Assembly: GCF_963676685.1 (NCBI RefSeq)
Contig: NC_092351.1
Coordinates: 9,362,001-9,426,000, forward strand
DNA from: Mytilus edulis
Taxonomy: Eukaryota
Reading direction: 5' to 3'
DNA: 64,000 nt
The notes under the pieces are model-generated. The model searched no databases. It was not told the origin of the DNA and saw only the letters and a list, made by a program, of their open reading frames with translations. Numbering within the stretch: position 1 is the first letter of the stretch; every line of letters starts with the position of its first letter. Both the position numbers and the translations under genes were made by a program. Positions 1 through 61,341 of the stretch are shown in pieces.

Positions 1-1542
1 TGGGAAGGAGCTGGAACAGAAACACTAACTATTTTGAAACACTTCGGGGCTCTAAGTGTTCCTGACAAGTTAGGTCAATTACCATGCCAGGTTGCTTATT
101 TTAACCGTTACAAGGAAGCATTTGATAACTTATGTTTGTGCAAAACTAACGTTCACGGTGACGTAATGGCTAACTTTTGTGTTAAAAGTGAAACAAGACT
201 AATACAAACGTTCACGGACTTGCAGTTTGAAGATTTAATAGAACGGTTTAGTAGATTTCGTGGTAAACTGAGATCTACACTTCTCAATTTACCAGACCTT
301 GGTCATGTGTCATTTCAAGAAGAAGCACACATGATTTATGCTTTTGTCAATAACCTAGTTAGCAATTTGTGCAGACAAATTGCAGAAACAGATAGACTTT
401 TAGCGAATATTGTTGTCGAATCAGGCAGCGTGGGTGAAAGAACAAAAGTTGGAAGACCAGATGAATTTGATTTTGTATGTATTTTTCAAGAATTTAGTAG
501 ACTTTGCGAAGTAGATGAAACTCTCTCCTCTGAAAATCCTGGATTTGCATATTTGAAATTAAAGTCAGAATATGTTAATGGTATCGATCAAGATTATTTT
601 AATGCCGATGGGTATTTCCAGACGCATTCTGTTTGGCATAAGTGTCAAACATTACTAACAGAACTATTGCAAATAGGTAATTTTTTCAGTCATCCAAATG
701 TAGTTTACTGTACAGAGCAAAGAACACCAAACTTTACAATAATGAGACCTACATGTCATTTCTCATTTTATTGGTCAGGACCATATTTCAAAAACATGAA
801 AATAAACGTTGATTTGGTACTAGCTTGTCAAATAGAAGGGTGGTGGCCACAAGCAACGAAACTGGAAAATCTGCCCAGTCAACTTCAACGTAATGCTCTA
901 CAAGAGGGGTGTATACTTATACTTCAAACCGAAATGAATGAAAATAAACACCAACTTCGAGTTTCTGCTTTGAATGCCGAGACAGCCTTGGTGAAATTGT
1001 TACCTCAAGTAGCTCGAGATGCATATGTTGTTTGTAAAATACTCTGTGATGAAAGAATATGTCCAAGTGTATGTGAGGAAGGAGAAGAAGATGACTGTCA
1101 TGACTGTAAAGAATATGTTACCAGCTATCAACTGAAGACGTGCATGTTTGAGGTCTTTAACAATTTTTATAATGAAAATATATCTCATGGAGAGGCAAAT
1201 TCTGAGGCTAACCTTCAGGACTTCACAGTTCAAATTCTCAAAACATATAAGAAGTATTTAACACTAGAAAACTTACCGTCGCATTTATTTCCCTGGCAAA
1301 ATGTGTTTACATTTTTAACATCGTGTCATTATAACGACGAACATCTGCGGGTTTTATGTTCGATGAGGAAATTGTTCACGACAATAATACTGGTGCTTTT
1401 AGGGGAACCACAAGACTTCAACGATGTTGATGTTGAAAGTATAAAGAACCATTGGAATGAATCAGAAGATGACAACATGATATCGGCAACAGAATATTGG
1501 AATAAATCAGAAGAAATGATAAGGGAATTAGAGGAGACGTAA
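1..1542 (+). CDS. Mab-21/cGAS-like receptor (cGLR) nucleotidyltransferase, 5'-truncated by the window; N-terminal ankyrin repeats inferred from the paralog
   Basis: The frame is open from base 1 (WEGAGTETLTILKHF...), so the TTG at 34 is not the real start. It has the NTase signature VESGSVGERTKVGRPDEFDFV (about 415-477), a third acidic residue in INVDLV (811), and Mab-21 C-terminal motifs LRVSALNAE, TSYQLKTCMF and LPSHLFPWQNVF. The paralog at 31326-33968 shows ankyrin repeats upstream of the same sequence. Confidence 0.9.
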   Translation, partial: WEGAGTETLTILKHFGALSVPDKLGQLPCQVAYFNRYKEAFDNLCLCKTNVHGDVMANFCVKSETRLIQTFTDLQFEDLIERFSRFRGKLRSTLLNLPDLGHVSFQEEAHMIYAFVNNLVSNLCRQIAETDRLLANIVVESGSVGERTKVGRPDEFDFVCIFQEFSRLCEVDETLSSENPGFAYLKLKSEYVNGIDQDYFNADGYFQTHSVWHKCQTLLTELLQIGNFFSHPNVVYCTEQRTPNFTIMRPTCHFSFYWSGPYFKNMKINVDLVLACQIEGWWPQATKLENLPSQLQRNALQEGCILILQTEMNENKHQLRVSALNAETALVKLLPQVARDAYVVCKILCDERICPSVCEEGEEDDCHDCKEYVTSYQLKTCMFEVFNNFYNENISHGEANSEANLQDFTVQILKTYKKYLTLENLPSHLFPWQNVFTFLTSCHYNDEHLRVLCSMRKLFTTIILVLLGEPQDFNDVDVESIKNHWNESEDDNMISATEYWNKSEEMIRELEET

Positions 1543-21664: not shown

Positions 21665-24600
21665 ATGAGTTCGAAACTCAAAACAGTACGAGCCGCACAT
21701 CGACGAGCAGTAATAAAGCTACTGAAAAAAGCAGACCCGACAGAAGAACCGCAACAAGATGTTGTCAACCTCAAATCCATGATGGAGCTTATCAAAACCA
21801 AGAAACAGACATTGTCCGACCTCAATGAGAAGATTTTAGAATCTATTGAAGAAGAAGAAGACCTCGACGAAGAAATTGAAGAAGTTGACAGATACGAGTT
21901 AGAGATTCAAATTGGAATAACGAAAATTGAAAAGTTCATAAAAGAAGTAAGTGTTAGTCAGTCTAAAAATCAATCAGCTCTTAACCCTAATGCATCAGAT
22001 TTTATATGCAATAACCCCAGCGTTCAAGAACATTCTAACCAGATAATTTTCAACTCAGAGCAGACAAGCCTAAGCCAGTCAAGCATGCCCACCTCCACAG
22101 TGTCAAGTCATTATAACAAATTGCCTAAACTCAACTTGCCAACTTTCGGCGGAAATCTATTGGAATGGTCAGCCTTTTGGGATTCCTATAATAATTCCGT
22201 ACATGAAAATCCTTCATTGAGTGACGTGCAACGATTTAATTATTTAAAATCGCAACTTTATGGAGAAGCTAGCCAGTGTATTTCGGGAATGCAAATGACT
22301 AATACAAACTATAATCAAGCAATACAAATTCTACACGAGAGATTTGGCCAACAACACAAAATAGTAAACGCATACATGCAAAATTTGCTAAATTTGCCTG
22401 CACCAACGCCCGGAATTAGGGGACTGAAATCGTTCAGTGACACAATAGAAAGTAATATACGTGAATTAGAAGGAATGGGTCGATATCAGGAATCGTACGG
22501 AAGCCTTTTAATACCACTAATACTCAACAAGCTTCCATGTTTTGTCAGACAAAACATTACTCGAGACCACGGTAATGATGATTGCGATATTTCAAGTTTA
22601 CGCAAAGCAATAAAGAAAGAAATTTGTATCCAAGAGGCCGCTAACGCCAATCCTATTGAAACCGATATTATCCCCACCGCATCGTTCGTGACAGAAACTA
22701 CAAATAAAAGATGGAAGTCAACAGGGTCTAAAGATAGTAACAACAATAGTTCCGTTAAGACTAAAAGGCCGTGTTTGTTTTGTCAAAGCCCGCATCACCC
22801 AAATGAATGTACAAAGATCACCGATATAAACGCCCGCACCCAAATCGTAAAGGAAAAACGAGTTTGCTTTAACTGTTTCGGTAATCACAAGGTTTCGGAA
22901 TGCAAGTCAAAATACAGTTGCCGAAATTGCAGTAAGAAACATCACAGTAGCATCTGCCGTAATAATTTACTAAATGAAAACTCCACTTCAAATGAAAATA
23001 AAGCCGTAACAAAACCTGTCAACGAAGAGCTTCAAAGTACCACAGAAACAAAGAGCGCCGCTATGCATTCTGCAGTTACAGCACATACCGAAATTCTATT
23101 GAAAACCGCCGTAGCGCCCGTATGGTACCATGATGAAAGTGTTATGACTAACATTCTACTCGATGAAGGCGCCCAGAATTCATTTATTTCTCAAGAACTA
23201 GTAGAGAAACTCCATATCAAACCAACTGGTATAGTAAGCATGCAAATTTCTGCATTTGGCGGGAAAGAAGGTGATGTACGCAACCTGGAGAAAGCAACAT
23301 TATCCATTGAGACCGAAAGAAAAGAAAGAATTCCAATGGAAGTAATTATTGTTCCAAAAATTGCCGCACCGATACATATGAAGAAACGGGTAAACATTAA
23401 CAGCTTGCCCTATTTACGAGGATTACAACTTGCCCACCCAGTCACGCAGGATGAAAAGTTTTCCATTTCACTTCTCGTTGGAGCAGACTATTACTGGTCT
23501 TTAGTACAAGATGAAATTATTCGAGGTGACGGACCAACAGCTGTTAAATCTAAAATAGGCTATTTGCTATCAGGACCACTGAACACAGATATCAACACTC
23601 AACAATGGAACTCTACGATGATGAATGTCTTAGTTGCGCACAAACCCGAGGAGTGCGATTTACAGAAATTTTGGGAAATTGAGTCGAGCGGATTAGAGGC
23701 GGATTCTGATGAAAACACAAAAAATGTACAAAACCTAATGCTTGAGTACCAAAACTCTAGCATAACATTTAAGGAAAATAAATATGTCGCAAAACTACCA
23801 TGGAAACAAGATCATCCCGAGTTACCCACTAATGAATATATAGCAAGAAGGAGGACCCAGAATGTTATAGATAGGTTGGCTAAAGATCCGGATATGTTAA
23901 ATCTATACGACAAGATTATCAAAGAACAGGAGATGAAAGACTTCATAGAAAAGGTACCCATTACAGAAATAGATCGCGAGCATGGAAGAATCCACTACAT
24001 ACCACACCATCCCGTTAAGAAAGATTCAAACACGACCCCTATTAGGATTGTATATGACTGCAGTTGCCATGGAAATCCAGATTTACCCAGCCTTAATGAC
24101 TGCCTATCTTCAGCACCACCTATTTTAAATAAATTGACAAGCATACTTACAAGATTTAGATTAGGAAAATATGGCATCACAACGGACATAGAAAAAGCAT
24201 TTTTACAAGTAAGACTTGACAATGATGACCGAGACGCCACACGTTTCTTTTGGTTATCCGATTCAACTGACCCAACAAGTGAATTGATTATGTACAGATT
24301 CAAAGTTGTTCTTTTTGGAGCAACGTGTTCGCCGTTTATTTTAAACGCAACATTACTGAAACATTTATCCACGAGTCAGAGCAAAGTAGCAACAATTCTA
24401 CAAGAAGATCTATATGTTGACAATGTACTATCTAGCATTAACTCGGAAGAAGCCACAATTAAATACTTCAATGAATCCAGAGAATTGCTAAAACAGGGAG
24501 GCTTCAACTTACGTTCATGGATGTCGAACAGCGACAAACTCAGAGATTTAGCCTTATCGGAAAAAGTACTGGATGCAGACAAGGTGACAAAAATATTGGG

Positions 24601-26959
24601 AATGCGCTGGGATGCAAACTCAGATACACTCAGCTTTGCCGAAACAAAACAATTAAAGATGGACACACAGTTGACAAAACGTGAACTTTTGAGACAGTCT
24701 TCTGCTATATATGACCCGTTAGGACTACTCGGACCGATAACCATTAGAGCAAAAACACTCATTCAAGACCTTTGGAAAAAAGGTTATGCATGGGACGAGA
24801 AACTACCAAAAGAAATTGAAAACGAATGGACCGATGTGAAGAATGACATCTTACAGATAACTACGAAACTTCAAATACAGAGATACTATTTTTCAAACGA
24901 GGACGAAGAAACTACCGAGTCTACTCTACACATTTTTGTTGATGCAAGTCAGAAAGCATACGGAGCTTCCGTTTACTTGAGTAAAGGCACAGGGTCGACA
25001 CTTGTTATCGCGAAGAACCGTGTAGCACCGTTAAAATTAATAACTCTACCAAAATTAGAATTAATGGCTGCAGTGATTGGAGCACGACTCTCAAAAGATG
25101 TAATCAAAAACTTAGGAATCAAAAGAGCAGTATTTTGGAGCGATAGCCAAATAGTTCTACATTGGCTCACCTCATCGAAATCGTCAAACAAGTTTGTAAA
25201 AAATCGTGTTAGTGAAATTAAAGAACTAACTGAAACTCATGAATGGAAATATGTACCCACAGAAATGAACCCAGCTGACTTACAAACACGTGGATTGACT
25301 GCATCGCAATTTGAAGATTCGACATTATGGATGAATGGACCCCAGTGGTTAACGGACGAGTGTAAATGGCCTACGTGGACAGGACATGTGGAAATAAGCA
25401 CTCAGCTATCTAATATCACCGGACCAAAGACACACAGAAGTGACGATAAAGTACCAAGTGATCCGCAGCGAATATCACAAATCATAGACATGAACAGGTA
25501 TTTTGATCTAAATAGACTTTTAACTGTAACTGGATACGTCTTGAAATTCGTTAAGAACTGCCAGAAAAAACGTCCATATCGACTACGGAGTTCACAAGGT
25601 GACAGGAACCTAAGAACAAGTCTAACAGAAGAGGAAATTTCATTAGCTATGAATTTATGGATCAAAGATACACAGCAAGACAGGTTCGTGAAAGAGCTAG
25701 AACATATTTCGTTAAACCCGAAAGTTAAATCACTACCGCTTGTACAACAGTTACGTTTATATTTGGATGAAAATGGAATCATACGATGTAAAGGCAGAAT
25801 ACAAAATTCATCTATAGAAGAAAACGCGAAGTTTCCTATTTTACTACCAAAGAACCACAAAGTTACAGATTTTGTCATTATGGACGCACATCTAAGAAAT
25901 CTACATACAGGAGTCGGTCAGACAATAACACATATAAGGCAATCTTACTGGATACCAGCAATTCGACAATGTGTGAACAGTGTCTTACGTAAATGCATAC
26001 AGTGCCAAAAAATAATTGGTAAACCGTATAACAGCCCGGAACCACCACCACTACCAAAGGATCGAGTAAAAGACACCATACCATTTTGCACAACTGGGAT
26101 AGATTTTGCCGGACCTCTACACATCAAGGATACATCAACACAACCGCGAAAGGTATATATATGTTTATTCACATGTGCATGTATACGAGCTATACATTTG
26201 GAACTTGTACCTGATTTGTCATTGAACACTTTTATCCTAGCATTTAGACGTTTTATCAGTCGAAAAGGAATACCGCAAACTATTTATTCTGATAACGCAC
26301 CTACATTTGTAGCCGCATCAAATGCACTTCAAAGTCAGCTGAATTTACATATCAACTGGAAATTCATTCCGAAAGGAGCGCCGTGGTATGGCGGATGGTG
26401 GGAACGTCTAATTGGCTTAACGAAAATGACATTAAAGAAAGTATTTGGTAAAGCACTCGTCAGCGAACAATCTTTGACAACAATACTCACTGAGATTGAA
26501 ACTATTATAAACAATCGCCCACTTACATATATATCTTCAGATATAAGAGATCCCGAACCCTTGACGCCATCTCATCTTTTACACGGGAGGATTATTACGA
26601 CCACAGAGATGCACAACGACAAACACAACGCAAATATTCAAGAACTTGATACGATCACAGCAAACAAACTATTTGAGAGAAAAGGACTCTTATTAGATCA
26701 TTTCGCAAAACGCTGGTCTAATGAATATCTTACCGGATTACGTGAATATCATCGAGCCTCTGGAAAACATACTGGACAAGTTAACATCGGTGATGTAGTT
26801 CAACTAGGAAGTGAATCGCCACGACTTTTATGGAGATTAGGAACAATAGAAGACGTCATCAAAGGAGGAGATGGACTTATTCGAGCAGCAAAAGTACGGA
26901 CTTCTAGAGGACTAGTTACCACGCGACCAATTGTGAAGTTATATCCATTAGAACTATAG
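21665..26959 (+). CDS. BEL/Pao gag-pol polyprotein, 1764 aa
   Basis: Gag KLPKLNLPTFGGNLLEWSAFWDSY; three Cys/His knuckles (CLFC..H...C, CFNC..H...C, CRNC..H...C); protease LLDEGAQNSF; RT DIEKAF, LFGATCSPF, YVDN; RNase H FVDASQKAYG; integrase HHCC plus GIDFAGP, SDNAPTF, WWERLIG. Confidence 0.97.
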   Translation: MSSKLKTVRAAHRRAVIKLLKKADPTEEPQQDVVNLKSMMELIKTKKQTLSDLNEKILESIEEEEDLDEEIEEVDRYELEIQIGITKIEKFIKEVSVSQSKNQSALNPNASDFICNNPSVQEHSNQIIFNSEQTSLSQSSMPTSTVSSHYNKLPKLNLPTFGGNLLEWSAFWDSYNNSVHENPSLSDVQRFNYLKSQLYGEASQCISGMQMTNTNYNQAIQILHERFGQQHKIVNAYMQNLLNLPAPTPGIRGLKSFSDTIESNIRELEGMGRYQESYGSLLIPLILNKLPCFVRQNITRDHGNDDCDISSLRKAIKKEICIQEAANANPIETDIIPTASFVTETTNKRWKSTGSKDSNNNSSVKTKRPCLFCQSPHHPNECTKITDINARTQIVKEKRVCFNCFGNHKVSECKSKYSCRNCSKKHHSSICRNNLLNENSTSNENKAVTKPVNEELQSTTETKSAAMHSAVTAHTEILLKTAVAPVWYHDESVMTNILLDEGAQNSFISQELVEKLHIKPTGIVSMQISAFGGKEGDVRNLEKATLSIETERKERIPMEVIIVPKIAAPIHMKKRVNINSLPYLRGLQLAHPVTQDEKFSISLLVGADYYWSLVQDEIIRGDGPTAVKSKIGYLLSGPLNTDINTQQWNSTMMNVLVAHKPEECDLQKFWEIESSGLEADSDENTKNVQNLMLEYQNSSITFKENKYVAKLPWKQDHPELPTNEYIARRRTQNVIDRLAKDPDMLNLYDKIIKEQEMKDFIEKVPITEIDREHGRIHYIPHHPVKKDSNTTPIRIVYDCSCHGNPDLPSLNDCLSSAPPILNKLTSILTRFRLGKYGITTDIEKAFLQVRLDNDDRDATRFFWLSDSTDPTSELIMYRFKVVLFGATCSPFILNATLLKHLSTSQSKVATILQEDLYVDNVLSSINSEEATIKYFNESRELLKQGGFNLRSWMSNSDKLRDLALSEKVLDADKVTKILGMRWDANSDTLSFAETKQLKMDTQLTKRELLRQSSAIYDPLGLLGPITIRAKTLIQDLWKKGYAWDEKLPKEIENEWTDVKNDILQITTKLQIQRYYFSNEDEETTESTLHIFVDASQKAYGASVYLSKGTGSTLVIAKNRVAPLKLITLPKLELMAAVIGARLSKDVIKNLGIKRAVFWSDSQIVLHWLTSSKSSNKFVKNRVSEIKELTETHEWKYVPTEMNPADLQTRGLTASQFEDSTLWMNGPQWLTDECKWPTWTGHVEISTQLSNITGPKTHRSDDKVPSDPQRISQIIDMNRYFDLNRLLTVTGYVLKFVKNCQKKRPYRLRSSQGDRNLRTSLTEEEISLAMNLWIKDTQQDRFVKELEHISLNPKVKSLPLVQQLRLYLDENGIIRCKGRIQNSSIEENAKFPILLPKNHKVTDFVIMDAHLRNLHTGVGQTITHIRQSYWIPAIRQCVNSVLRKCIQCQKIIGKPYNSPEPPPLPKDRVKDTIPFCTTGIDFAGPLHIKDTSTQPRKVYICLFTCACIRAIHLELVPDLSLNTFILAFRRFISRKGIPQTIYSDNAPTFVAASNALQSQLNLHINWKFIPKGAPWYGGWWERLIGLTKMTLKKVFGKALVSEQSLTTILTEIETIINNRPLTYISSDIRDPEPLTPSHLLHGRIITTTEMHNDKHNANIQELDTITANKLFERKGLLLDHFAKRWSNEYLTGLREYHRASGKHTGQVNIGDVVQLGSESPRLLWRLGTIEDVIKGGDGLIRAAKVRTSRGLVTTRPIVKLYPLEL

Positions 26960-53066: not shown

Positions 53067-53430
53067 TTACCTTGAAGTTTGCGATCGCTATTTTGTTTTC
53101 TTTTTTTTAAGCAGTTTTAGATAGTACGTATTGTGTATTGCTGCTTTGCTTTGGCTTAACGGCAGGAAAGTCGTCACCAGTTGAATTTAGTGATATTTCA
53201 TTTTCTTTATTCAGTCTCTATTCTTTTTTTTTTTTTTTTTTTTAACAACATAATAATATTTATTCATCTAATCTTGCTTGTTACAAGTTTCACCAAGAGT
53301 CCAAGCTTCTCTTGATTTACCCTGTTACACTCCACTGATTATCCAGGGAAATAAACAGCTAATCAAACTTATTAAGTTATAAAAAATAATATAAAGTTGT
53401 ATAGTTGTCTTATGCAGAGATTTATCAATG

Positions 53431-56400
53431 CTAAAAATTCTTTCTAATTGACAATAATATTGGACATCTTGTATTATATGCATCTATTCTTTTATTAAAT
53501 TCATTTTCAAAAATGCTAAAGACATCAACAGTTTGTGTTCTCTGCTCGGATACATAGTATGACTTATATATAGAAAAACTTAATACTGTTAGTATATAAT
53601 TCAGAAAATAATAATTACTATCTGCGATTTTATATCCAAATACCAGATGTTGCAATTTAATATCAAAATCTATTTTACTTCTTCTAAAGAGTTCATAGAT
53701 TTTTTGCCAAAATTTATTCAAATATCTACACTTCAAAAAATAGTGAGCATAATCTTCTTCTTGCTTACAAAAATTACATTTATCTGTCTTAGTTACTTTC
53801 CACTGCAATAACAGTTTTTTAGTTGGAACAATATAATGTAATAATTTCCATCTAAATATTTTTAATTTATTTTCAGTCATATATTCAAAAATAAATTTGT
53901 ACAATGAATTCATATTAAGAGTTTCTTGTATTGGTAGGATTCTAAGCCATCTGTTTATCCCTATTGACGACTCTAGTTTTGTATTTACCAAAGAGTTGTA
54001 TAACATTTTATTTGTTAATAATGTAGTCTCAATAAAATTATTTTTCCATACGATTTTATTTCTCTGAATATTTATTGTAGTTTTGACAGAACTCTCTTTT
54101 TGAACAATTTGAATCCATTCTGCTGGTATAGATTTTTTTAATTTTTGAAACTCGGCGATCCAGTTTATTTTTAACTTTAATTTGTTTAGAATGTAGATTT
54201 CTGATAATGACAATTTATCATCTAAGATATCATTTATGTAAATTAAATCACTCTTAATCCAGTTCTCAAATATGATTGGTTTATTATCAAATTTTATATA
54301 TTTATTTCCCCATATTACTTGCTTTCTAATATCAAAAAATGTGTCTGGTTGTTTTGTTTGCCCCCCGCCAGTCAAATTCCAAGACTTTATTACTTCTTTA
54401 TAAAACGCAGGAATATCTTTAAGATATCTTAAAGATTTGATATCACTAAAATTCATATTAAATATTGACAAAATATTGTTTGAGACATTTAAGTATTTAA
54501 ATGGTATAAGCTTCCAAGTCTCAAGTTTACCATTTACCAATCTATTTACCCATGATGCTTTTAAAGCCACAAAATAACTTTTAAAGTCTACCATTTTAAG
54601 ACCCCCCTTCTCATATGGACCAATCATCATGTTTCTTTTAATCTTGTCTGGTTTCCCATCCCAAATATATTTATAGCTACTGTTTTCTATTTCTTTTATA
54701 TAATTTTCTGGGGTTAGACATACGCTTCCCAAGAAAGTAAACAAAGGCAATATTAAAGTCTTTATAATTAGGATTTTTCCTAAAATAGAAAGATTTCGTT
54801 TTTTCCATATCATAAATAATTTATTCATCTTTTCTATTTTACCATTCCAGTTTAACTTTTTGCATTCTTCTTTGTCATGTCCGAAAAACACCCCTAAAGC
54901 TTTAATAGGTTTATCTCCCCACTTAATCCCGACAATTTTATCTTTACAAGATTTCAATTTTCCAATCCATAATCCCTCTGTTTTATTTCTATTTAGTAGT
55001 AAACCTGAAAAGGAACCAAAAATTTCTATTTCGTTCATTGCAGCTACCACATCGTTTTTATCCTTGCAAAATAGTGTTGTGTCGTCTGCTAATTGTGAAA
55101 TCTTGATACTATGACTTTTCCCATCTAATTTTATATTAATTCCTTTTACATTTTTATTATTTCTTAATCTCTGGGCCATAATTTCAACAGCCAAAACAAA
55201 TAAAAGAGCCGATAAAGGACAGCCTTGTCTTATTCCACGTGAATTTTTGAAAGTTTCTGATACCCACCCATTGTTCATAACACATGTTTGTATATCTGTG
55301 TACATTGCTTTAACCCAGTTAATAAATGAATCGTTAAAACCAAAATGTTTCAATGTTCCAAACATAAAATCCCATTCCAATGAATCGAACGCTTTTGTAA
55401 AATCTACAAAAACTAATGCCCCCTTAATATTATATGTGTCTGCGTAGTCTATTACATCTTGAATTTGTCTCAAATTAAACCCAATAAATCTGTTTTTAAC
55501 ATAACCGGTTTGGTCTTCATTTATAATTTTTGGCAGTACCTTTTTTAATCTTTGAGCTAGAACATATGACAAAAGTTTAAAATCTACATTTAAAAGTGAA
55601 ATTGGACGGTAGTTTTCCAAAAGTAAAGGATCTCCTTTTTTAAATATTAAAGTTAATATACTGGTACGTTGTGAGTATGATAAACTTTGTTTATCGTAGC
55701 CAGTATTTAGAACATCCACAACTAAAAATTTAAGTTTATCCCAAAATTGTCTATAAAATTCAACCGTTAGACCATCAAGCCCTGGTGATTTATTTAGTTT
55801 CATTTTATAAATGCCTTGCGTGCATTCCTCTACTGTAACTTTTCCATCGCATATCAGTTTATCCTTTTCGTCTACTTGATTTTCTAATTTTGTGTCATTG
55901 ATATATTTTTCAGTTAAATTTTTATTTGCAGATTTTACATTATACAAGTTTTCATAGAAATTTTTTATTTTATGGAGTAAATTTTCTTGATTAGTAATTA
56001 ATTCCCCATCCTCTCCTTTTAGTTTGCTTATTGATTTTTTCACTTGCCTCTTCTTTTCTAGACCGAGGAAGTAGGAATTGTTCTTTTCCCCAAACTCAAC
56101 CCATTTTTCTCTAGATCTAATTTGTGCCCCTCTTGCCTTTTCGTCATAAATGTTACTTAATTCTTTTTCTATATCTTTAATTTCTTTTTCCAAATTTTGA
56201 TTTTCATCATTATTTCTCTCATCTATAAGTTCCATCTTTTGTTCCAGATCTTGTTCTAAACTACGCCTTCGCTCTCTTGTTAACTTCGCTTTATTTCTAC
56301 AGTAAGTTGTAGTTACTTCCCTTACCTCGATTTTAAATCCATCCCATAAAAGCCTACAATCTATTGAGTCTTTTTTAAATGTATATTTATCAATTAAACA

Positions 56401-57213
56401 TTTTATACATTCTTGATAATCTTTATTTTGTAATACTGAGTTATTTATTTTCCAATACCCATTTCCCCTTTCTGATAACCCTGGCTTAAATTTTAAAAAT
56501 ACACTTTGGTGATCAGTAGACTGTATAACAGCCGGTTTAATTTTACACCATTCTATAAGAGGTAAAAATTCTGACCCAATAAAAATCATGTCTAGTCTAC
56601 TAGCTTGTGATTTATCTTTTCTTCTCCATGTAAATTGCTGTTTATTTGTGTTTAAATTTCTCCAAACATCCGTTAATTTGTTAGTTTTTATTAATTGCTT
56701 TAATCCGTTAACAGGTTGAATAAATTTACCAGTACATAAAGACTTTCTATCGATTGGTTTAAGTGCATCATTAAAATCTCCCCCTAGTATATGTATACCA
56801 AGACTGTATTCTTTCAAATTATCGCTTACTTTTTTAAAAAAAGAATTTCTTGAAGTTTTACAGTTCGGTGCATATATGCTGGAAAATGTGAAAATAGTAT
56901 TATTTAATTGCACATTAATAAGTATAAATCTCCCTTCACTATCACTAAATTTATTTATAAATTCAAAGCTCAGTGACTTTTTAATTAAAATAGCTACTCC
57001 CCTACTAGCTGTTGTACCGTTACTGCAAAAAGTTTCATATTCTGTTTTATTTTTAATTTCTCTTTCAATATTTTCGTCAAAATGTGTTTCTTGTAAAAAT
57101 GTAATTTGACTTTTCTGTGCTTTTATCCATTCTATTACTCTATTCCTTTTCCCTCTAGAACCGATGCCATTAACATTGAGACTACATAAGTTAATTGTAT
57201 GTGCTAAAGCCAT
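53431..57213 (-). CDS. LINE ORF2: APE endonuclease + reverse transcriptase + C-terminal Cys/His finger, 1260 aa
   Basis: EN motifs SLNVNG, LQETH, IYAPN, GGDFN, SRLD, TDH; RT motifs KSPGLDG, YRPISLLN, DFTKAFD, GIRQGCPLS, LADD; C-terminal CNFC...EDYAHYFLKC. Confidence 0.97.
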   Translation of the reverse strand: MALAHTINLCSLNVNGIGSRGKRNRVIEWIKAQKSQITFLQETHFDENIEREIKNKTEYETFCSNGTTASRGVAILIKKSLSFEFINKFSDSEGRFILINVQLNNTIFTFSSIYAPNCKTSRNSFFKKVSDNLKEYSLGIHILGGDFNDALKPIDRKSLCTGKFIQPVNGLKQLIKTNKLTDVWRNLNTNKQQFTWRRKDKSQASRLDMIFIGSEFLPLIEWCKIKPAVIQSTDHQSVFLKFKPGLSERGNGYWKINNSVLQNKDYQECIKCLIDKYTFKKDSIDCRLLWDGFKIEVREVTTTYCRNKAKLTRERRRSLEQDLEQKMELIDERNNDENQNLEKEIKDIEKELSNIYDEKARGAQIRSREKWVEFGEKNNSYFLGLEKKRQVKKSISKLKGEDGELITNQENLLHKIKNFYENLYNVKSANKNLTEKYINDTKLENQVDEKDKLICDGKVTVEECTQGIYKMKLNKSPGLDGLTVEFYRQFWDKLKFLVVDVLNTGYDKQSLSYSQRTSILTLIFKKGDPLLLENYRPISLLNVDFKLLSYVLAQRLKKVLPKIINEDQTGYVKNRFIGFNLRQIQDVIDYADTYNIKGALVFVDFTKAFDSLEWDFMFGTLKHFGFNDSFINWVKAMYTDIQTCVMNNGWVSETFKNSRGIRQGCPLSALLFVLAVEIMAQRLRNNKNVKGINIKLDGKSHSIKISQLADDTTLFCKDKNDVVAAMNEIEIFGSFSGLLLNRNKTEGLWIGKLKSCKDKIVGIKWGDKPIKALGVFFGHDKEECKKLNWNGKIEKMNKLFMIWKKRNLSILGKILIIKTLILPLFTFLGSVCLTPENYIKEIENSSYKYIWDGKPDKIKRNMMIGPYEKGGLKMVDFKSYFVALKASWVNRLVNGKLETWKLIPFKYLNVSNNILSIFNMNFSDIKSLRYLKDIPAFYKEVIKSWNLTGGGQTKQPDTFFDIRKQVIWGNKYIKFDNKPIIFENWIKSDLIYINDILDDKLSLSEIYILNKLKLKINWIAEFQKLKKSIPAEWIQIVQKESSVKTTINIQRNKIVWKNNFIETTLLTNKMLYNSLVNTKLESSIGINRWLRILPIQETLNMNSLYKFIFEYMTENKLKIFRWKLLHYIVPTKKLLLQWKVTKTDKCNFCKQEEDYAHYFLKCRYLNKFWQKIYELFRRSKIDFDIKLQHLVFGYKIADSNYYFLNYILTVLSFSIYKSYYVSEQRTQTVDVFSIFENEFNKRIDAYNTRCPILLSIRKNF

Positions 57214-58540
57214 TATTAAAGTTACAAATTAATGATCTTATTAGCTTCAACAATGATATATTAACTATAGCATGCATAGTACTGCTCATATTTACTATAA
57301 GATTGACATAAATATACATCATTTTAATAAAGTCATATTTATAGCACAATTTTCTATAAAATAAAAACATATAATATTTACCAGTAGGTATACCCTGGTG
57401 TGACCTCCACATAATTATTGATACGCTACTAAACCACGGGTCTATCGTGTGCCCTTTAATACATGTTGATACATACCAATAAAGATAATTGGCTAAGTTC
57501 GGAAAAAAGACATACATAAATTTTATACATTCCCTGTGTGAACTATGTGCTTTCGATTGTGTATACAATCTATTCGATATTTTATTTATCAACGCATTAT
57601 GTATTCGATTGAGTTGTGTAATGGAATATCTTTGTGAAAGTTCGAAACAAAAAGATTCTTCCGCTTTGTGTGTGCATGATGATGTAATTGTATTTACAAG
57701 TCTGCCAATTTTATAAGACAAAATTTCAACCGGGATATAAGTTATTTGTGTATTATACACTTCTACACTGCTTTGTATTTTTAGCTCAACAAATTGAATC
57801 TGAAGTTTATCAAGTGTTGGATTGTATAAATATGTGTGCGGTTTTTCAATCAATTGTTTTGGATTATATAACCATGAGTGGTTCATGTGACCATATCTAT
57901 ATTTTGCAGGTAAGTAACTATTTTTGATAAACATTTTATTATCGTATGTTTTATTGAATTTCAGGTGTTGTTGAGAAAATGTTGTACTGAGACTAACGAA
58001 TCTCGTGTATGGCTTATCGTTGATTGACACTGCGTGTTGTGTTACTAAAAATAGCATAGGTAAAAACCCAAATAGTCTACTTGTCAGTTTGATAATATTG
58101 AACAGCTGATTTCTAAAAGTTTGTTCTATACAAGATTGTTCTATACGAGAGTCATTACTATAACTTTCAATAGTTTTGTAGCAATTTGTACATATTGATT
58201 TTACTACTAAGTCGTTAATCTGTCTAAAGATTGTTATACCCGTACATAATATTGGTACATAGAAGACATATAGTATTTTAACAACTTTTAACACATTCAA
58301 TTTTATCACATTCAATTTGTTACATCTGTTATACACTTCTCTACAACATGATTGAACTCTTTCAAAGAGCTTAAAACTTTTATATACTTTTATTAATTTT
58401 TTTTTCATGTATTCATGGTATTTGATATAAAATAAAATTTCAGCAAAACAAAAAAGTAAGCTGAGACATATAAAACATTCACTAATGTTTTTTATGTATG
58501 ATTGGTTAACTCTTAATCTGAGCTTGAATTTGTTGTACAT
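57191..58540 (-). CDS. Extra 449-aa ORF of unknown function between LINE ORF1 and ORF2; several hydrophobic segments
   Basis: ATG-initiated, on the element's sense strand, fills almost the whole inter-ORF space and overlaps the ORF2 start by 23 nt. No recognisable domain. Confidence 0.6.
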   Translation of the reverse strand: MYNKFKLRLRVNQSYIKNISECFICLSLLFCFAEILFYIKYHEYMKKKLIKVYKSFKLFERVQSCCREVYNRCNKLNVIKLNVLKVVKILYVFYVPILCTGITIFRQINDLVVKSICTNCYKTIESYSNDSRIEQSCIEQTFRNQLFNIIKLTSRLFGFLPMLFLVTQHAVSINDKPYTRFVSLSTTFSQQHLKFNKTYDNKMFIKNSYLPAKYRYGHMNHSWLYNPKQLIEKPHTYLYNPTLDKLQIQFVELKIQSSVEVYNTQITYIPVEILSYKIGRLVNTITSSCTHKAEESFCFELSQRYSITQLNRIHNALINKISNRLYTQSKAHSSHRECIKFMYVFFPNLANYLYWYVSTCIKGHTIDPWFSSVSIIMWRSHQGIPTGKYYMFLFYRKLCYKYDFIKMMYIYVNLIVNMSSTMHAIVNISLLKLIRSLICNFNNGFSTYN

Positions 58541-58627
58541 ATTTTAAATATTTTTGTAGTTTAATTTATATGATAAAACTATAATACAATCCTTTAATGT
58601 CATTAAGATATTAATTTGAACATTTGA

Positions 58628-59917
58628 TTATGCTTTAGTCTTTTTAGTTCCATGAACTCCAGTAGTTTTCTCATGTAGAGCTTCAGTTGGTGTTGGTGGT
58701 GTTCTGTCTCCTGCATTAACTGTTCTTCTATGTGGTGTTCTGACAAACCTCTCCATAGATGGTTGTGTTTTGTCTGTGTTACCACTATTGCCAAGATTGG
58801 TTTTTTGTTGTCCTGACTTGTTTGCATGTTTCTTGCTACCACCTCTTGTGTTTTCAGATGTTTTTGAAGAAGGAGATTTTGTTGGAGTTTTTGTAAGTTC
58901 TACACTCTCCTCCTGTACATTGTCATCACCAGACTCAATGCAATTCTGCTCTAATTGCTGATTATTCTCATCTTTGTCCTGGAAGTTTTTTTGACAGTCA
59001 ATCATTTTGTGTCCACTCTCTTTGCAAATTTTACAAGCCCAATCATTAGGGCACTGGAACAGCATATGTCCTGGTTGAAGGCATTTGTGACAAATTCTTT
59101 CTTCTGAATTGTTATTTCTGTTTTCGAATTCAGGTTGGCCCGAATGGAAAATTCTGCCCATGTATTTTCCAATTTGCAAATTTCTAGGTATAGGTTTATC
59201 TAGTGTCTTACTAATCACTAGTCTATCACCAGTCTCACAGTTGGTTACTTTTCCGTCTATGCGCAAACGCTCCCTAAACAATCCCTGAATTTTACAGCCT
59301 TGAAGGGATAGGGCTCGATGTATTTGCCCATCGTCCGCAGAAAGGGGGATGTTCTTCACCTTTATGCGGATTGTGTCACTTTGTAACGTAGATGGATTGT
59401 GAGGGTTTTGTGAGAGAAGGGGTACTTGCCTGCCACGTAAGTTTAACCCCTGTACTAACAAAGACAGTCTGTCACCCTCATTGTCCATGTATATACGCCA
59501 CATCTCTCTTATTCTTTGTATCCCCTTAATGCACTCTTCTGGGACTTTAGCACCAATTGACTTGTATATTTCGACATTTGTGAGCCATTGGGTGCGAGGA
59601 GGTTTGACCGAGCCATGAACATCTTGATCTTTCAAGAAAATAGGTTTTACAAAATCGCCCGGGTCACTTTGTTCTCTTGGTGCTTTATAGTGAGTATTAT
59701 TCTCTGTATATGATTGATCAGATTGAATGTTACTTTGATTTTTGTGAATATCTGAAACTGCCTCGGCGTACGTCGCCATTTTGTCATTGTTTACATCTGA
59801 ACTGACCGTCGCTTCATTTTGTAATGTAAATGTATCAGTACCCTGTAGACCTTCTATAAGCCTTTGAAGGCGATCCTGAGTCATTTTTCTGCATAATGCT
59901 TCTACTTCTGCATTCAT
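58628..59917 (-). CDS. LINE ORF1 (gag-like RNA-binding protein with two CCHC knuckles), 429 aa
   Basis: TYAEAV motif, CHKCLQPGHMLFQC and CKICKESGHKMIDC, low-complexity C-terminus; first ORF after the 5' UTR. Confidence 0.92.
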   Translation of the reverse strand: MNAEVEALCRKMTQDRLQRLIEGLQGTDTFTLQNEATVSSDVNNDKMATYAEAVSDIHKNQSNIQSDQSYTENNTHYKAPREQSDPGDFVKPIFLKDQDVHGSVKPPRTQWLTNVEIYKSIGAKVPEECIKGIQRIREMWRIYMDNEGDRLSLLVQGLNLRGRQVPLLSQNPHNPSTLQSDTIRIKVKNIPLSADDGQIHRALSLQGCKIQGLFRERLRIDGKVTNCETGDRLVISKTLDKPIPRNLQIGKYMGRIFHSGQPEFENRNNNSEERICHKCLQPGHMLFQCPNDWACKICKESGHKMIDCQKNFQDKDENNQQLEQNCIESGDDNVQEESVELTKTPTKSPSSKTSENTRGGSKKHANKSGQQKTNLGNSGNTDKTQPSMERFVRTPHRRTVNAGDRTPPTPTEALHEKTTGVHGTKKTKA

Positions 59918-61341
59918 TTTCAGCTTTTTCCAACTAGTTAAATCACTTTTTTTATGGAGTATTGTACGATACGTCTTAACATATCAAGGGACGTTACTCA
60001 TCTCTATTCTTGAATTTTGTTTTTTGTTTTTATCGAAGGCTTTTCTGTGATGTAAATAGTAGTTTGAACCACTAAAATCTATCTACTTTTCTTTTCTTTT
60101 CAAAAATGCGTTTAATCCAGTAAAATGCACTTTTACATATTTTAGTTATTTCTAAAGTCACCCCAAGGGATCAAAGTCAAAATGACATTTCCCAAAACCT
60201 TTGATTTTTCAATTATCGAATACTACTATCATAATCAAAATTGTTAAAAGCCCAAATTAACGAGTTTTAACTTTGTTCTTAGTAAAAAAAAATCATTGGT
60301 GGCGTGTGGTGTTTATCGAATGTATGTTTTTATGCAAAGAATATTTCAACTTCAAGGTAACTATCAGCTCCAATAAAAGGTATTTTCCCTATAGAATTTG
60401 ATGTCATCCTTTCTATTTGAAAGCCCTAAGTCATGATACAGTACTTAATTAACGATCAGATTACAATAATAAACCTAACATTATAAATGTCAATCCATTT
60501 GTCGTTCTAGTTGCTTTTGTTGTGATTACAATTTTTTATTATTTTTTTTTAAAGATACGCAGCATAGTTTAAACATAATAATGGGAGTCTTAAATATACA
60601 TTTCGTGCTTTGGGTTATAAAAATTCTTATTTTTTTTGAAGAATTATACTGATTCTCCAAAACAATATAGTAAATATGATATAATCCAATTGTTGAATTT
60701 TTTTATCAATTTTTTTTTTGTTGATTTCAGGTCGGTGTTCTAATGGGTTTAGATAGTGCTACCTTCTGGTCGACTTGTTTTTGTACTCATATGAAGCAAA
60801 ATTAATTTAGGAACTTTTAGAAGACAAATAAAAGCGTCTATGCGTACTGTGTTTACTCATTGTTGAAGGCAATACGATGACTATAGCTGTTTTAAATGTC
60901 TTTGTCATTTGGTCTCTTGTTGAAAGTAGTAGCATTGACATTCATATCATACCTTATTTTCATATATCGTGTCTGCTTCTTTTTAAAAATTATACAGTTT
61001 TAGAAATTTAATTATATTTGTTCCACTTTTTTGGAAGAAGAAATGATTTTTTATATGATATCTGCGACAGATTCGGAGAATTTTAAGCATACTCCGCTAC
61101 ATTGTAGAAAGTGCGAAAACTATCTATTGGATATTTGTTTTATTGTTTTCAAGCATGGACTGTTTCCTTTAACGTTCTAAATGTATTAAATGATAATTTA
61201 ATTTTGGATGTAACGAGTCTTCTGATTGGCTGATAGTGTTTTGTCTATCAGCTCATAGTCATGTTTTTTTCATGTGACCGTGACGTCATCAACGCTTTCA
61301 TGGATAACGTCGGTTTAAAATGATCTTTTAAAATTGAATTA

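Follow-up and report, generated by a model that had tools for sequence, protein, structure and literature searches.

A long, selected open reading frame between ORF1 and ORF2 of an L1-superfamily LINE from Mytilus edulis, and its possible role in relaying ribosomes to ORF2

Introduction

How ribosomes are delivered to ORF2 of LINE elements is a long-standing question, and work on it has been confined almost entirely to mammalian L1 and a few insect elements. The ORF2 of human L1 is reportedly reached by an unconventional termination-reinitiation, and that of mouse L1 is said to be reached through an inter-ORF IRES. The ORFs of mammalian L1 elements either overlap or are separated by at most 63 nt, and the inter-ORF region is non-coding. 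In SART1, an R1-clade LINE of Bombyx, ORF1 and ORF2 are reportedly coupled through a UAAUG stop-start. The element that we describe here belongs to the same superfamily as human and mouse LINE-1 and shares with them the problem of bringing a few ribosomes to a far-downstream ORF2 on a polycistronic RNA. Yet its inter-ORF region is 1.4 kb in length and consists of a single selected ORF, which we term ORFm; since the inter-ORF is itself an ORF, two successive restarts would be called for. The similarity to SART1 is that an upstream stop overlaps the ORF2 start, and in both cases initiation at ORF2 would hinge on termination of the frame before it. In SART1, however, it is ORF1 that is coupled, by an overlap of 1 nt, whereas ORFm is an extra, orphan cistron with an overlap of 20-23 nt.

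Additional ORFs have been described in L1 elements: primate ORF0, an antisense frame of 71 aa within the 5' UTR, and the antisense frames of some mammals (PMC5203782). Like ORFm, these are lineage-restricted, additional frames without a known domain. They are antisense or upstream of ORF1, in contrast to ORFm, which is in the sense orientation between ORF1 and ORF2, has 408-517 codons and is found in several families. Tx1 or L1-Tx1 elements are reported to be widespread in molluscs (PMC10294476, PMC11203168), and resemble the present element in the CCHC knuckle of ORF1 and in the APE, RT and zf-RVT domains of ORF2; the passages searched in these reports contain no mention of a third ORF. Our literature search brought up no account of a third ORF on the sense strand of L1/Tx1 elements.

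Results

The window analysed is a stretch of 64,000 nt of M. edulis DNA, and the parts of the element described below all lie on its minus strand. A LINE of the L1 superfamily occupies window positions 53226-60000. The target-site duplication AAGAATAGAGA is present on the 5' side at 60001-60011, and the same 11 nt recur after the poly(A) tail, at 53215-53225. A 5' UTR of 83 nt (59918-60000) precedes ORF1 (58628-59917), which by ORF call and Pfam encodes 429 aa with a CCHC zinc knuckle. As judged from the sequence and from alignment, ORF1 is separated by a spacer of 87 nt containing two mini-ORFs (58541-58627) from ORFm, the orphan, basic and weakly constrained middle ORF of 449 codons (57191-58540; the ATG is at 58540 and the TAA ends at 57191). 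The ATG of ORF2 lies upstream of the ORFm TAA, such that the two frames overlap by 23 nt (57191-57213). ORF2 (53431-57213; 1260 aa, ORF call and Pfam) encodes an APE endonuclease, a reverse transcriptase and a zf-RVT domain, and is followed by the 3' UTR (53244-53430) and a poly(A) tail of ~18-20 nt (53224-53243), of which the final two A are possibly part of the target-site duplication. The 5' end of the element was fixed at 60000 from contigs of four sequencing runs, which leave the element at 59999-60001 and diverge there into four different flanks. For so small a number of insertion sites, the differing flanks would tend to speak against a single fixed target of the sequence-specific kind associated with the Tx1 subclade.

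An original prediction, made from the DNA letters, had described here a complete element (target-site duplication, poly(A), intact ORF1 and ORF2) carrying an uninterrupted sense-strand ORF of 449 codons that starts 87 nt after ORF1, in the same frame but behind a second in-frame TAA, and that ends 23 nt inside an ORF2 in the +1 frame. Every part was found where it had been placed, the positions are exact, and the element is a genuine three-ORF member of the L1 superfamily.

The assignment to that superfamily follows several lines of evidence. Within ORF2, Pfam recognized Exo_endo_phos at residues 10-235, RVT_1 at 525-775 and zf-RVT at 1100-1169 (E 6e-11), that is, APE followed by RT and a C-terminal zinc domain, and the element has a poly(A) tail and an 11-bp target-site duplication. 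Among solved structures the best relative of ORF2 is human L1 ORF2p, which is collinear over residues 7-889 (E 1e-96), and R2 gave a weaker match (1e-16 to 1e-17). A CCHC-type ORF1 is compatible with placement in the Tx1 subclade. The departure from the usual L1 organization is the inter-ORF region, which is ordinarily short or non-coding but here extends over 1414 nt and contains the 449 selected codons of ORFm. A scan of the whole element against Rfam gave no match.

Base composition predicts a stop frequency of 0.085 per codon, and hence a probability of ~5e-18 that 449 codons would be open; this probability excludes chance as the source of the open ORFm frame. Other ORFs of at least 130 aa in the window belong to a BEL/Pao element, a Mab-21 ORF and an ankyrin ORF, and the remainder are one of 266 aa without a Pfam match and three of 144-163 aa. 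In neutral simulations, the probability that ORFm would still be open was at most 0.0003 at 0.1 substitutions per site. We also considered the inter-ORF DNA as a spliced-out intron, and set this reading aside because the contigs of four runs contained no joints. Contigs from RNA libraries span parts of ORFm only, and are no proof of transcription.

In the window copy, ORFm starts in the frame of ORF1, and there are at least two in-frame stops between the two ORFs, including a TAA two codons before the ORFm ATG. Across lineages, ORFm begins 76-87 nt past the ORF1 stop and runs 20-23 nt into ORF2, with an overlap of 23 nt for the window copy, L062 and the L061 family (from the ending of P0002), and of 20 nt for L069. 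The end of ORFm thus overlaps the start of ORF2 in the manner of a stop-start coupling. The frame relationships are less regular than these distances. Between ORF1 and ORFm, no two lineages have the same offset (0, -1 and +1). Relative to ORFm, ORF2 is shifted by +1 in the window copy and L062 but by -1 in L069; in all lineages, ORF2 retains its own AUG and a conserved N-terminus. Because the frames are inconsistent at both junctions, each ORF must have its own initiation. Within the spacer, a core of the form TTGTA..ATAGTTTTATCATA.AAA is conserved with respect to the sister lineages (alignment z 4.8-6.5 against shuffles), although synonymous sites are saturated between these lineages. The motif of a calicivirus-type TURBS (UGGGA) was not found: in the window copy and L062, the 150 nt that precede the ORF2 ATG contain neither TGGGA nor GGGA. 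The UGGGA motif is not required by all termination-reinitiation systems.

Openness of the middle frame was read directly in four lineages, and more distant families are known from match tables. ORFm is open in two sister lineages, represented by L061 and L062 (413 and 408-429 aa), which show ~30% amino-acid identity to the window copy in ORFm and 70-77% in ORF1 and ORF2. At the nucleotide level the aligned ORFm sequences differ by 25% between L061 and L062, and by ~43% between the window copy and either of them, and all are open over 408-449 aa. A fourth family, whose ORF1 is 61% and whose APE domain is 63% identical to those of the window element, has an open frame of 513 or 517 codons at two genomic places. 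At one of these (C1) the frame lies between its own ORF1 and ORF2; the other place (C4) is not tied to flanking ORFs. Metagenome contig L069 belongs to this family, and its middle frame ends 20 nt inside ORF2. The fourth-family frame has no detectable similarity to ORFm. Thus, to the question posed with the original prediction, whether the spacer stays open in other copies, the answer is that it is open in four diverged lineages.

The organization is also not the peculiarity of a single element, as had been supposed, but is common to a group of related families in the genome. All 58 ORF1/ORF2 pairs detected there (ORF1 identity 37-100%) have an estimated spacer of at least ~870 nt, mostly 870-1750 nt, with a median of 1312. 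Wherever a match to ORFm in its own genome could be placed, it lay within a copy of the same LINE group, and those matches for which both flanks were seen were always between ORF1 and ORF2. The ORFm profile, at a relaxed threshold in the same genome, gave no match in the spacers of the distant families, and in DNA searches nucleotides 7-219 were the sole part of ORFm that found further diverged copies.

Selection on ORFm was evident in several comparisons. The dN/dS ratio was 0.55-0.66 for ORFm (bootstrap upper bound 0.86-0.91), 0.16-0.24 for ORF1 and 0.07-0.14 for ORF2, and the shifted frames of ORFm gave 0.9-1.5. Under a null model in which the frame is only kept open, the mean was 0.97 (sd 0.145), and none of 300 simulations gave a value at or below the observed 0.64; some selection at the amino-acid level therefore acts on ORFm, which a pure relay of ribosomes does not need. 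Insertions and deletions respect the frame: the three indels that separate the window copy from 98% relatives are of 9, 3 and 6 nt and recur in contigs of other runs, 11 of the 17 gaps in the nucleotide alignment of L061 with L062 have a length divisible by 3, and the sister lineages show an in-frame length difference of 47 aa, whereas the gaps in decayed copies are mainly of 1-2 nt. Both signs of constraint that had been proposed as checks, a dN/dS below 1 and indels mostly in multiples of three, were therefore observed. Among young copies, synonymous and non-synonymous differences are in a ratio of ~1:1, against a rough, uncomputed neutral guess of ~1:3. Between L061 and L062, the first 180 ORFm codons had a dS of 0.13-0.33 and the remaining ones of 0.42-0.72, and in ORF1 dS was ~0.4. 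In the aggregate, the ORFm frame is kept open by selection across the whole ORF1-ORF2 interval, and its amino-acid sequence is weakly constrained and unrecognisable between families. It seems to be the open frame, rather than a defined protein fold, that matters most.

The predicted ORFm product is basic (K+R 57, D+E 23), with a net charge of +28 to +35 in all three lineages compared, and is rich in I, L, F, Y, K and N. The view that this composition resembles translated AT-rich DNA was upheld: it is near the expectation from nucleotide composition, and first codon positions show no G excess. Database comparisons bore out the lack of a known relative. Pfam gave no family for ORFm at E up to 0.1, no PDB entry was matched by the ORFm profile at E up to 1, and the ESM Atlas gave no usable match. 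A search for homologous proteins returned one match, P0001 (97% identical; an unnamed ENA record), and a profile search of 1.84 billion representative proteins returned 5, all of them fragments of the same element families. Comparison of the ORFm profile by hhalign with ORF1 and ORF2 of the same element showed no similarity, which ruled out ORFm as a decayed duplicate of either. AlphaFold2, from a 7-row alignment, predicted no fold (mean pLDDT 29).

About five hydrophobic stretches had been noted in this product, from which a membrane-associated accessory protein was suggested. With a cut-off of 1.6 on the Kyte-Doolittle mean of 19 residues we observed only two, at residues 19-37 and 81-104. 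When the window and L061 copies were compared with composition-preserving shuffles, neither the number of segments (P 0.31 and 0.78) nor their maximum (P 0.16) was in excess. The stretches are thus what composition predicts, and lend no support to a membrane-associated protein. The ~95-residue N-terminal part, with a hydrophobic segment at 19-45, keeps its position across three lineages, and the motifs LKLFERV, FLPMLFLVT, NYLP.EY.Y, RSHQ and P.LANY are shared by lineages that are only ~30% identical.

Discussion

The original prediction had offered ORFm either as a membrane-associated protein or as a frame kept open to deliver ribosomes to ORF2. Its selected middle ORF stands and its coupling to ORF2 fits best, as the properties that are conserved are openness, the position of the start and an end just inside ORF2; the membrane protein is not supported by the hydrophobic stretches. 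From these comparisons we give about an even chance to the explanation that ORFm is the third cistron of a tricistronic L1-superfamily LINE, common to related families, that would relay ribosomes to ORF2. The interval between ORF1 and ORF2 holds 37 ATGs, and with that many AUGs to pass, scanning to ORF2 should be impossible for ribosomes. Those that have finished ORF1 would restart at the AUG of ORFm and read through this frame, and termination just past the ORF2 AUG would permit reinitiation at ORF2, a sequence of events that would set a low ORF2 dose. The ORFm polypeptide would probably be a tolerated or mildly useful by-product, a status that would explain why dN/dS is near 0.6 instead of 1. 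The length of the interval counts against such a relay, which does not need 450 codons and leaves the origin of that length without explanation. Also, the 20-23 nt overlap may be partly a by-product of AT-rich ORF2 codons, which soon yield an out-of-frame stop.

A possible though doubtful alternative is that the ORFm product is an accessory protein in the true sense, which serves the life cycle of the element in a role of its own, and that its rapid turnover reflects an arms race or a loose structure. The roles could be, for example, RNP assembly or nucleic-acid binding (from the charge), targeting to a membrane or organelle (from the N-terminal hydrophobic segment) or antagonism of host defence. 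This explanation accounts directly for a dN/dS below that of the open-only null, for the shared motifs, the fixed position of segment 19-45 and the constant positive charge in three lineages, and for the ~1:1 ratio in young copies. It is less easily reconciled with the absence of homologues from 1.84 billion representatives, the PDB, Pfam and the ESM Atlas other than those of the element family itself, with a pLDDT of 29, with a composition that equals the nucleotide expectation and carries no coding signature at first codon positions, and with hydrophobic segments within shuffle expectation. Moreover, in the family whose ORF1 is 61% identical, the slot is occupied by a sequence unrelated to ORFm, and length varies from 408 to 517 codons.

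We regard as improbable a third explanation, by which an RNA element in the spacer and 5' part of ORFm (for instance an IRES, or a signal for packaging or cis-preference) is the main object of selection and the frame is secondary. The spacer core that is kept despite saturated synonymous sites, the low dS over the first 180 codons between L061 and L062 and the restriction of distant DNA matches to nucleotides 7-219 are all consistent with such an element. However, it would not explain the avoidance of stops over 1.2-1.5 kb or the in-frame indels, there is no Rfam match, and the low 5' dS could stem from recombination between lineages.

Two further explanations are very improbable. Fusion of ORFm to either neighbouring ORF, through readthrough of a stop codon or a programmed frameshift, is suggested by the frame shared with ORF1 in the window copy and by the constant end of ORFm within the first 7-8 ORF2 codons, but is largely refuted by the inconsistent frames at both junctions, by the two or more in-frame stops after ORF1 in the window copy and by the conserved AUG and N-terminus of ORF2. 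A functionless frame, whether a chance or very recent de novo ORF or a captured host or foreign sequence, agrees with the orphan status of ORFm and with its likeness to random AT-rich DNA, but a chance origin is refuted by the probability of 5e-18 and by retention in four diverged lineages, where drift would have closed the frame at 0.1 substitutions per site, and the in-frame indels and the confinement of placeable genome matches to copies of the same LINE group also speak against a functionless frame.

With somewhat less than even confidence, we propose from the genome comparisons that a whole clade of L1/Tx1-type LINEs in this genome is obligately tricistronic. Its hypervariable orphan cistron of 400-500 codons would either be a ribosome relay, whose translation ORF2 synthesis requires, or encode a fast-evolving accessory protein that is in conflict with its host. 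In these active-looking families of L1 type, ORF2 is preceded by a long, selected and sequence-labile cistron, and under either of these functions it would represent a LINE expression strategy not described so far. If ORFm relays ribosomes to ORF2, it would provide a natural system for long-range reinitiation in animals, and would show that selection for an open frame alone can make protein-like ORFs from AT-rich RNA. An accessory protein would be the first case known to us in which an L1-type element has a third protein encoded on the sense strand, and an obligately tricistronic clade would be a natural case of selected openness with drifting sequence. The finding also bears on annotation, since gene prediction in mollusc genomes will list frames of this kind as orphan 'membrane proteins', of which P0001 is an example.

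Organization of the element

The minus strand of the window carries a complete non-LTR retrotransposon (53226-60000), with the 11-bp duplication AAGAATAGAGA on both sides of it and an A run of ~18-20 nt just ahead of the 3' copy of the duplication. We observed three ORFs, all on this strand: ORF1 (58628-59917; 429 aa), for which the domain search gave a CCHC knuckle; the middle frame, ORFm (57191-58540; 449 aa), for which the Pfam search gave no family; and ORF2 (53431-57213; 1260 aa), with the Pfam domains Exo_endo_phos, RVT_1 and zf-RVT. ORFm begins 87 nt past the ORF1 stop and overlaps ORF2, which lies in the +1 frame, by 23 nt. The original prediction of a three-ORF LINE was exact in the coordinates of ORFm, in the spacer, overlap and frame, and in the 11-bp duplication. 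Human L1 ORF2p aligned collinearly with the window ORF2 (E 1e-96) and R2 proteins far more weakly (1e-16 to 1e-17 at best), a difference that argues solidly for membership in the L1 superfamily, the level at which the assignment is made, Tx1 subclade aside. Contigs from four public runs exit the element at 59999-60001, each into another flank, which fixes the 5' end of the element and shows that it occupies several insertion sites. Runs with element sequence are labelled as mollusc, marine, invertebrate-gut and fish-gut metagenomes and as three coded organisms.

In mammalian L1, ORF2 is made by reinitiation or from an IRES over a short non-coding spacer, and in SART1 the sequence UAAUG couples ORF1 and ORF2. 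The additional L1 ORFs known so far are either antisense or located in the 5' UTR (PMC5203782). The searched passages of mollusc L1-Tx1 surveys (PMC10294476, PMC11203168) do not mention a third ORF, and our literature search found no description of the three-ORF layout.

Conservation of the middle frame

The base composition of ORFm predicts 0.085 stops per codon and a probability of ~5e-18 that 449 codons would be open. Retention of the frame over diverged lineages is, however, the stronger argument. The original prediction had asked whether the spacer stays open in other copies, whether its indels come in multiples of three and whether dN/dS is below 1. In the same genome, two of the three copies ~98% identical to the window copy have an open ORFm (444 aa), and the third has a 1-nt indel and a TAA in ORFm together with stops in ORF2; copies of ~90% identity are decayed in ORF1, ORFm and ORF2 alike. 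ORFm is also open in two sister-lineage copies, L061 (413 aa) and L062 (408-429 aa). Identity to the window copy is 71-73% for ORF1 of both, 76-77% for ORF2 of L062 (that of L061 ends after residue 69, cut by other ORF-bearing sequence with ORFs at L061:5652-8399) and 29-32% for ORFm, which is 58% identical between L061 and L062. Aligned nucleotides differ by 25% between L061 and L062 and by about 43% between the window copy and either; in neutral simulation, 0.1 substitutions per site closed the frame with a probability above 0.999.

Three indels, of 9, 3 and 6 nt, set the window copy apart from all its relatives and recur in contigs from runs of other coded organisms. Of the 17 ORFm gaps in a nucleotide-level alignment of L061 with L062, 11 have a length divisible by three, and the remaining ones combine in pairs to such lengths; gaps in decayed copies are mostly of 1-2 nt. 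ORFm dN/dS was 0.64 (NG86) or 0.55 (ML) for L061 versus L062, and 0.62-0.66 (NG86; bootstrap upper bounds 0.86-0.91) for the window copy versus either, compared with 0.9-1.5 for the same alignments in shifted frames, 0.16-0.24 for ORF1 and 0.07-0.14 for ORF2. Simulations at the same divergence that forbade only stops gave 0.97 ± 0.145, with none of 300 at or below the observed value, and amino-acid-level constraint on ORFm is therefore present but weak. Selection for openness is strong and selection on sequence is weak. Synonymous divergence is lowered in the ORF1-ORFm spacer and the ~180 first codons (window 58000-58627, minus strand, and the L061/L062 equivalents): dS is 0.13-0.33 in the first 180 codons versus 0.42-0.72 in the rest (ORF1, ~0.4). 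An RNA-level element may account for this, as may recombination between the lineages.

Three-ORF layout in other families

Pairing of ORF1 matches with ORF2 endonuclease matches in own-genome hit tables yielded 58 elements, with ORF1 identities from 100% down to 37%. The ORF1-ORF2 interval, as estimated from these tables, is at least ~870 nt in all 58, mostly 870-1750 nt (median 1312); four intervals exceed this range, at 2.7-4.9 kb, perhaps owing to insertions. A metagenome contig representing a fourth family, L069 (endonuclease 62% identical), has a 248-codon open frame that ends 20 nt inside ORF2. Its 212-aa ORF matches C1:9218837-9219472 and C4:97259415-97260050 of the own-genome assembly at 96-97% identity, within open frames of 517 and 513 codons, respectively; the C1 frame fills the whole ~1.6-kb interval between its own ORF1 (61% identical) and ORF2 (63% identical). 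Similarity between the L069-family middle ORF and ORFm was undetectable (hhalign probability 0.2), and an ORFm profile found no match in spacers of distant families in the own genome. The three-ORF layout thus extends beyond the clade of the window copy, L061 and L062.

Proposed expression of ORFm and ORF2

The core of the ORF1-ORFm spacer (76-87 nt) is conserved (alignment z 4.8-6.5 versus shuffles). At the other junction, ORFm ends past the ORF2 AUG, and never ahead of it, in the four lineages read, the L061 copy excepted. There, a ~47-nt tandem duplication (L061:5020-5160; C8, about 20115520-20115660) alters the ORFm ending and abolishes the overlap; the database protein P0002 shows the normal ending of this family. 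The reading that we favor, with evenly balanced confidence, is that the element RNA would be tricistronic and ORFm mainly a translated bridge, from which ribosomes would be handed to ORF2 by termination-reinitiation, its product being tolerated or mildly useful. RNA-library contigs, in which no joints are seen, cover portions of ORFm and of ORF1 and are no proof of transcription.

The main rival, that ORFm encodes a fast-evolving accessory protein, seems to us possible but doubtful. The weak constraint described above and a hydrophobic segment at residues 19-45, constant in position in three lineages, may be set beside several indications that the protein is under hardly any constraint. Its amino-acid composition is approximately that predicted from nucleotide composition; first codon positions show no G excess, unlike those of ORF1 and ORF2, their sole shift being the T depletion that stop avoidance requires; and AlphaFold gave a pLDDT of 29. 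Searches of Pfam, PDB, ESM Atlas and 1.84 billion protein representatives found no relatives outside these elements, and hhalign no similarity to the element's own ORF1 and ORF2. The hydrophobic stretches, earlier taken to suggest a possible membrane-associated protein, do not exceed shuffles in number or strength.

Scanning from ORF1 to the ORF2 AUG past an untranslated ORFm is implausible under the standard scanning model, because the interval contains 37 ATGs. Fusion of ORFm with ORF1 or ORF2 by readthrough or frameshifting is unlikely, since the ORF1-to-ORFm offset takes another value in each lineage and ORF2 is +1 relative to ORFm in the window copy and L062 and -1 in L069, so that each ORF needs separate initiation.

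Other features

The edge of the window carries a 502-aa ORF (34-1542, plus strand; listed with a TTG start) that matches the Mab-21 nucleotidyltransferase domain at E 7.5e-9 and, from this match, would be a cGAS/Mab21-like gene or exon. An apparently intact BEL/Pao LTR retrotransposon ORF of 1764 aa (21665-26959, plus strand) contains Peptidase_A17, DUF1759, RVT_1, integrase zinc-binding and core, and DUF5641 domains. The segment 31934-33968 (plus strand) holds a 434-aa ankyrin-repeat ORF and an overlapping 266-aa ORF without a Pfam match. Elsewhere in the genome, the middle region recurs on one strand of G000:C10:73.52-73.75 Mb in at least five decayed and nearly identical copies, including L067 and L068, spaced tens of kb apart; they look like a segmentally duplicated block carrying an old element copy.
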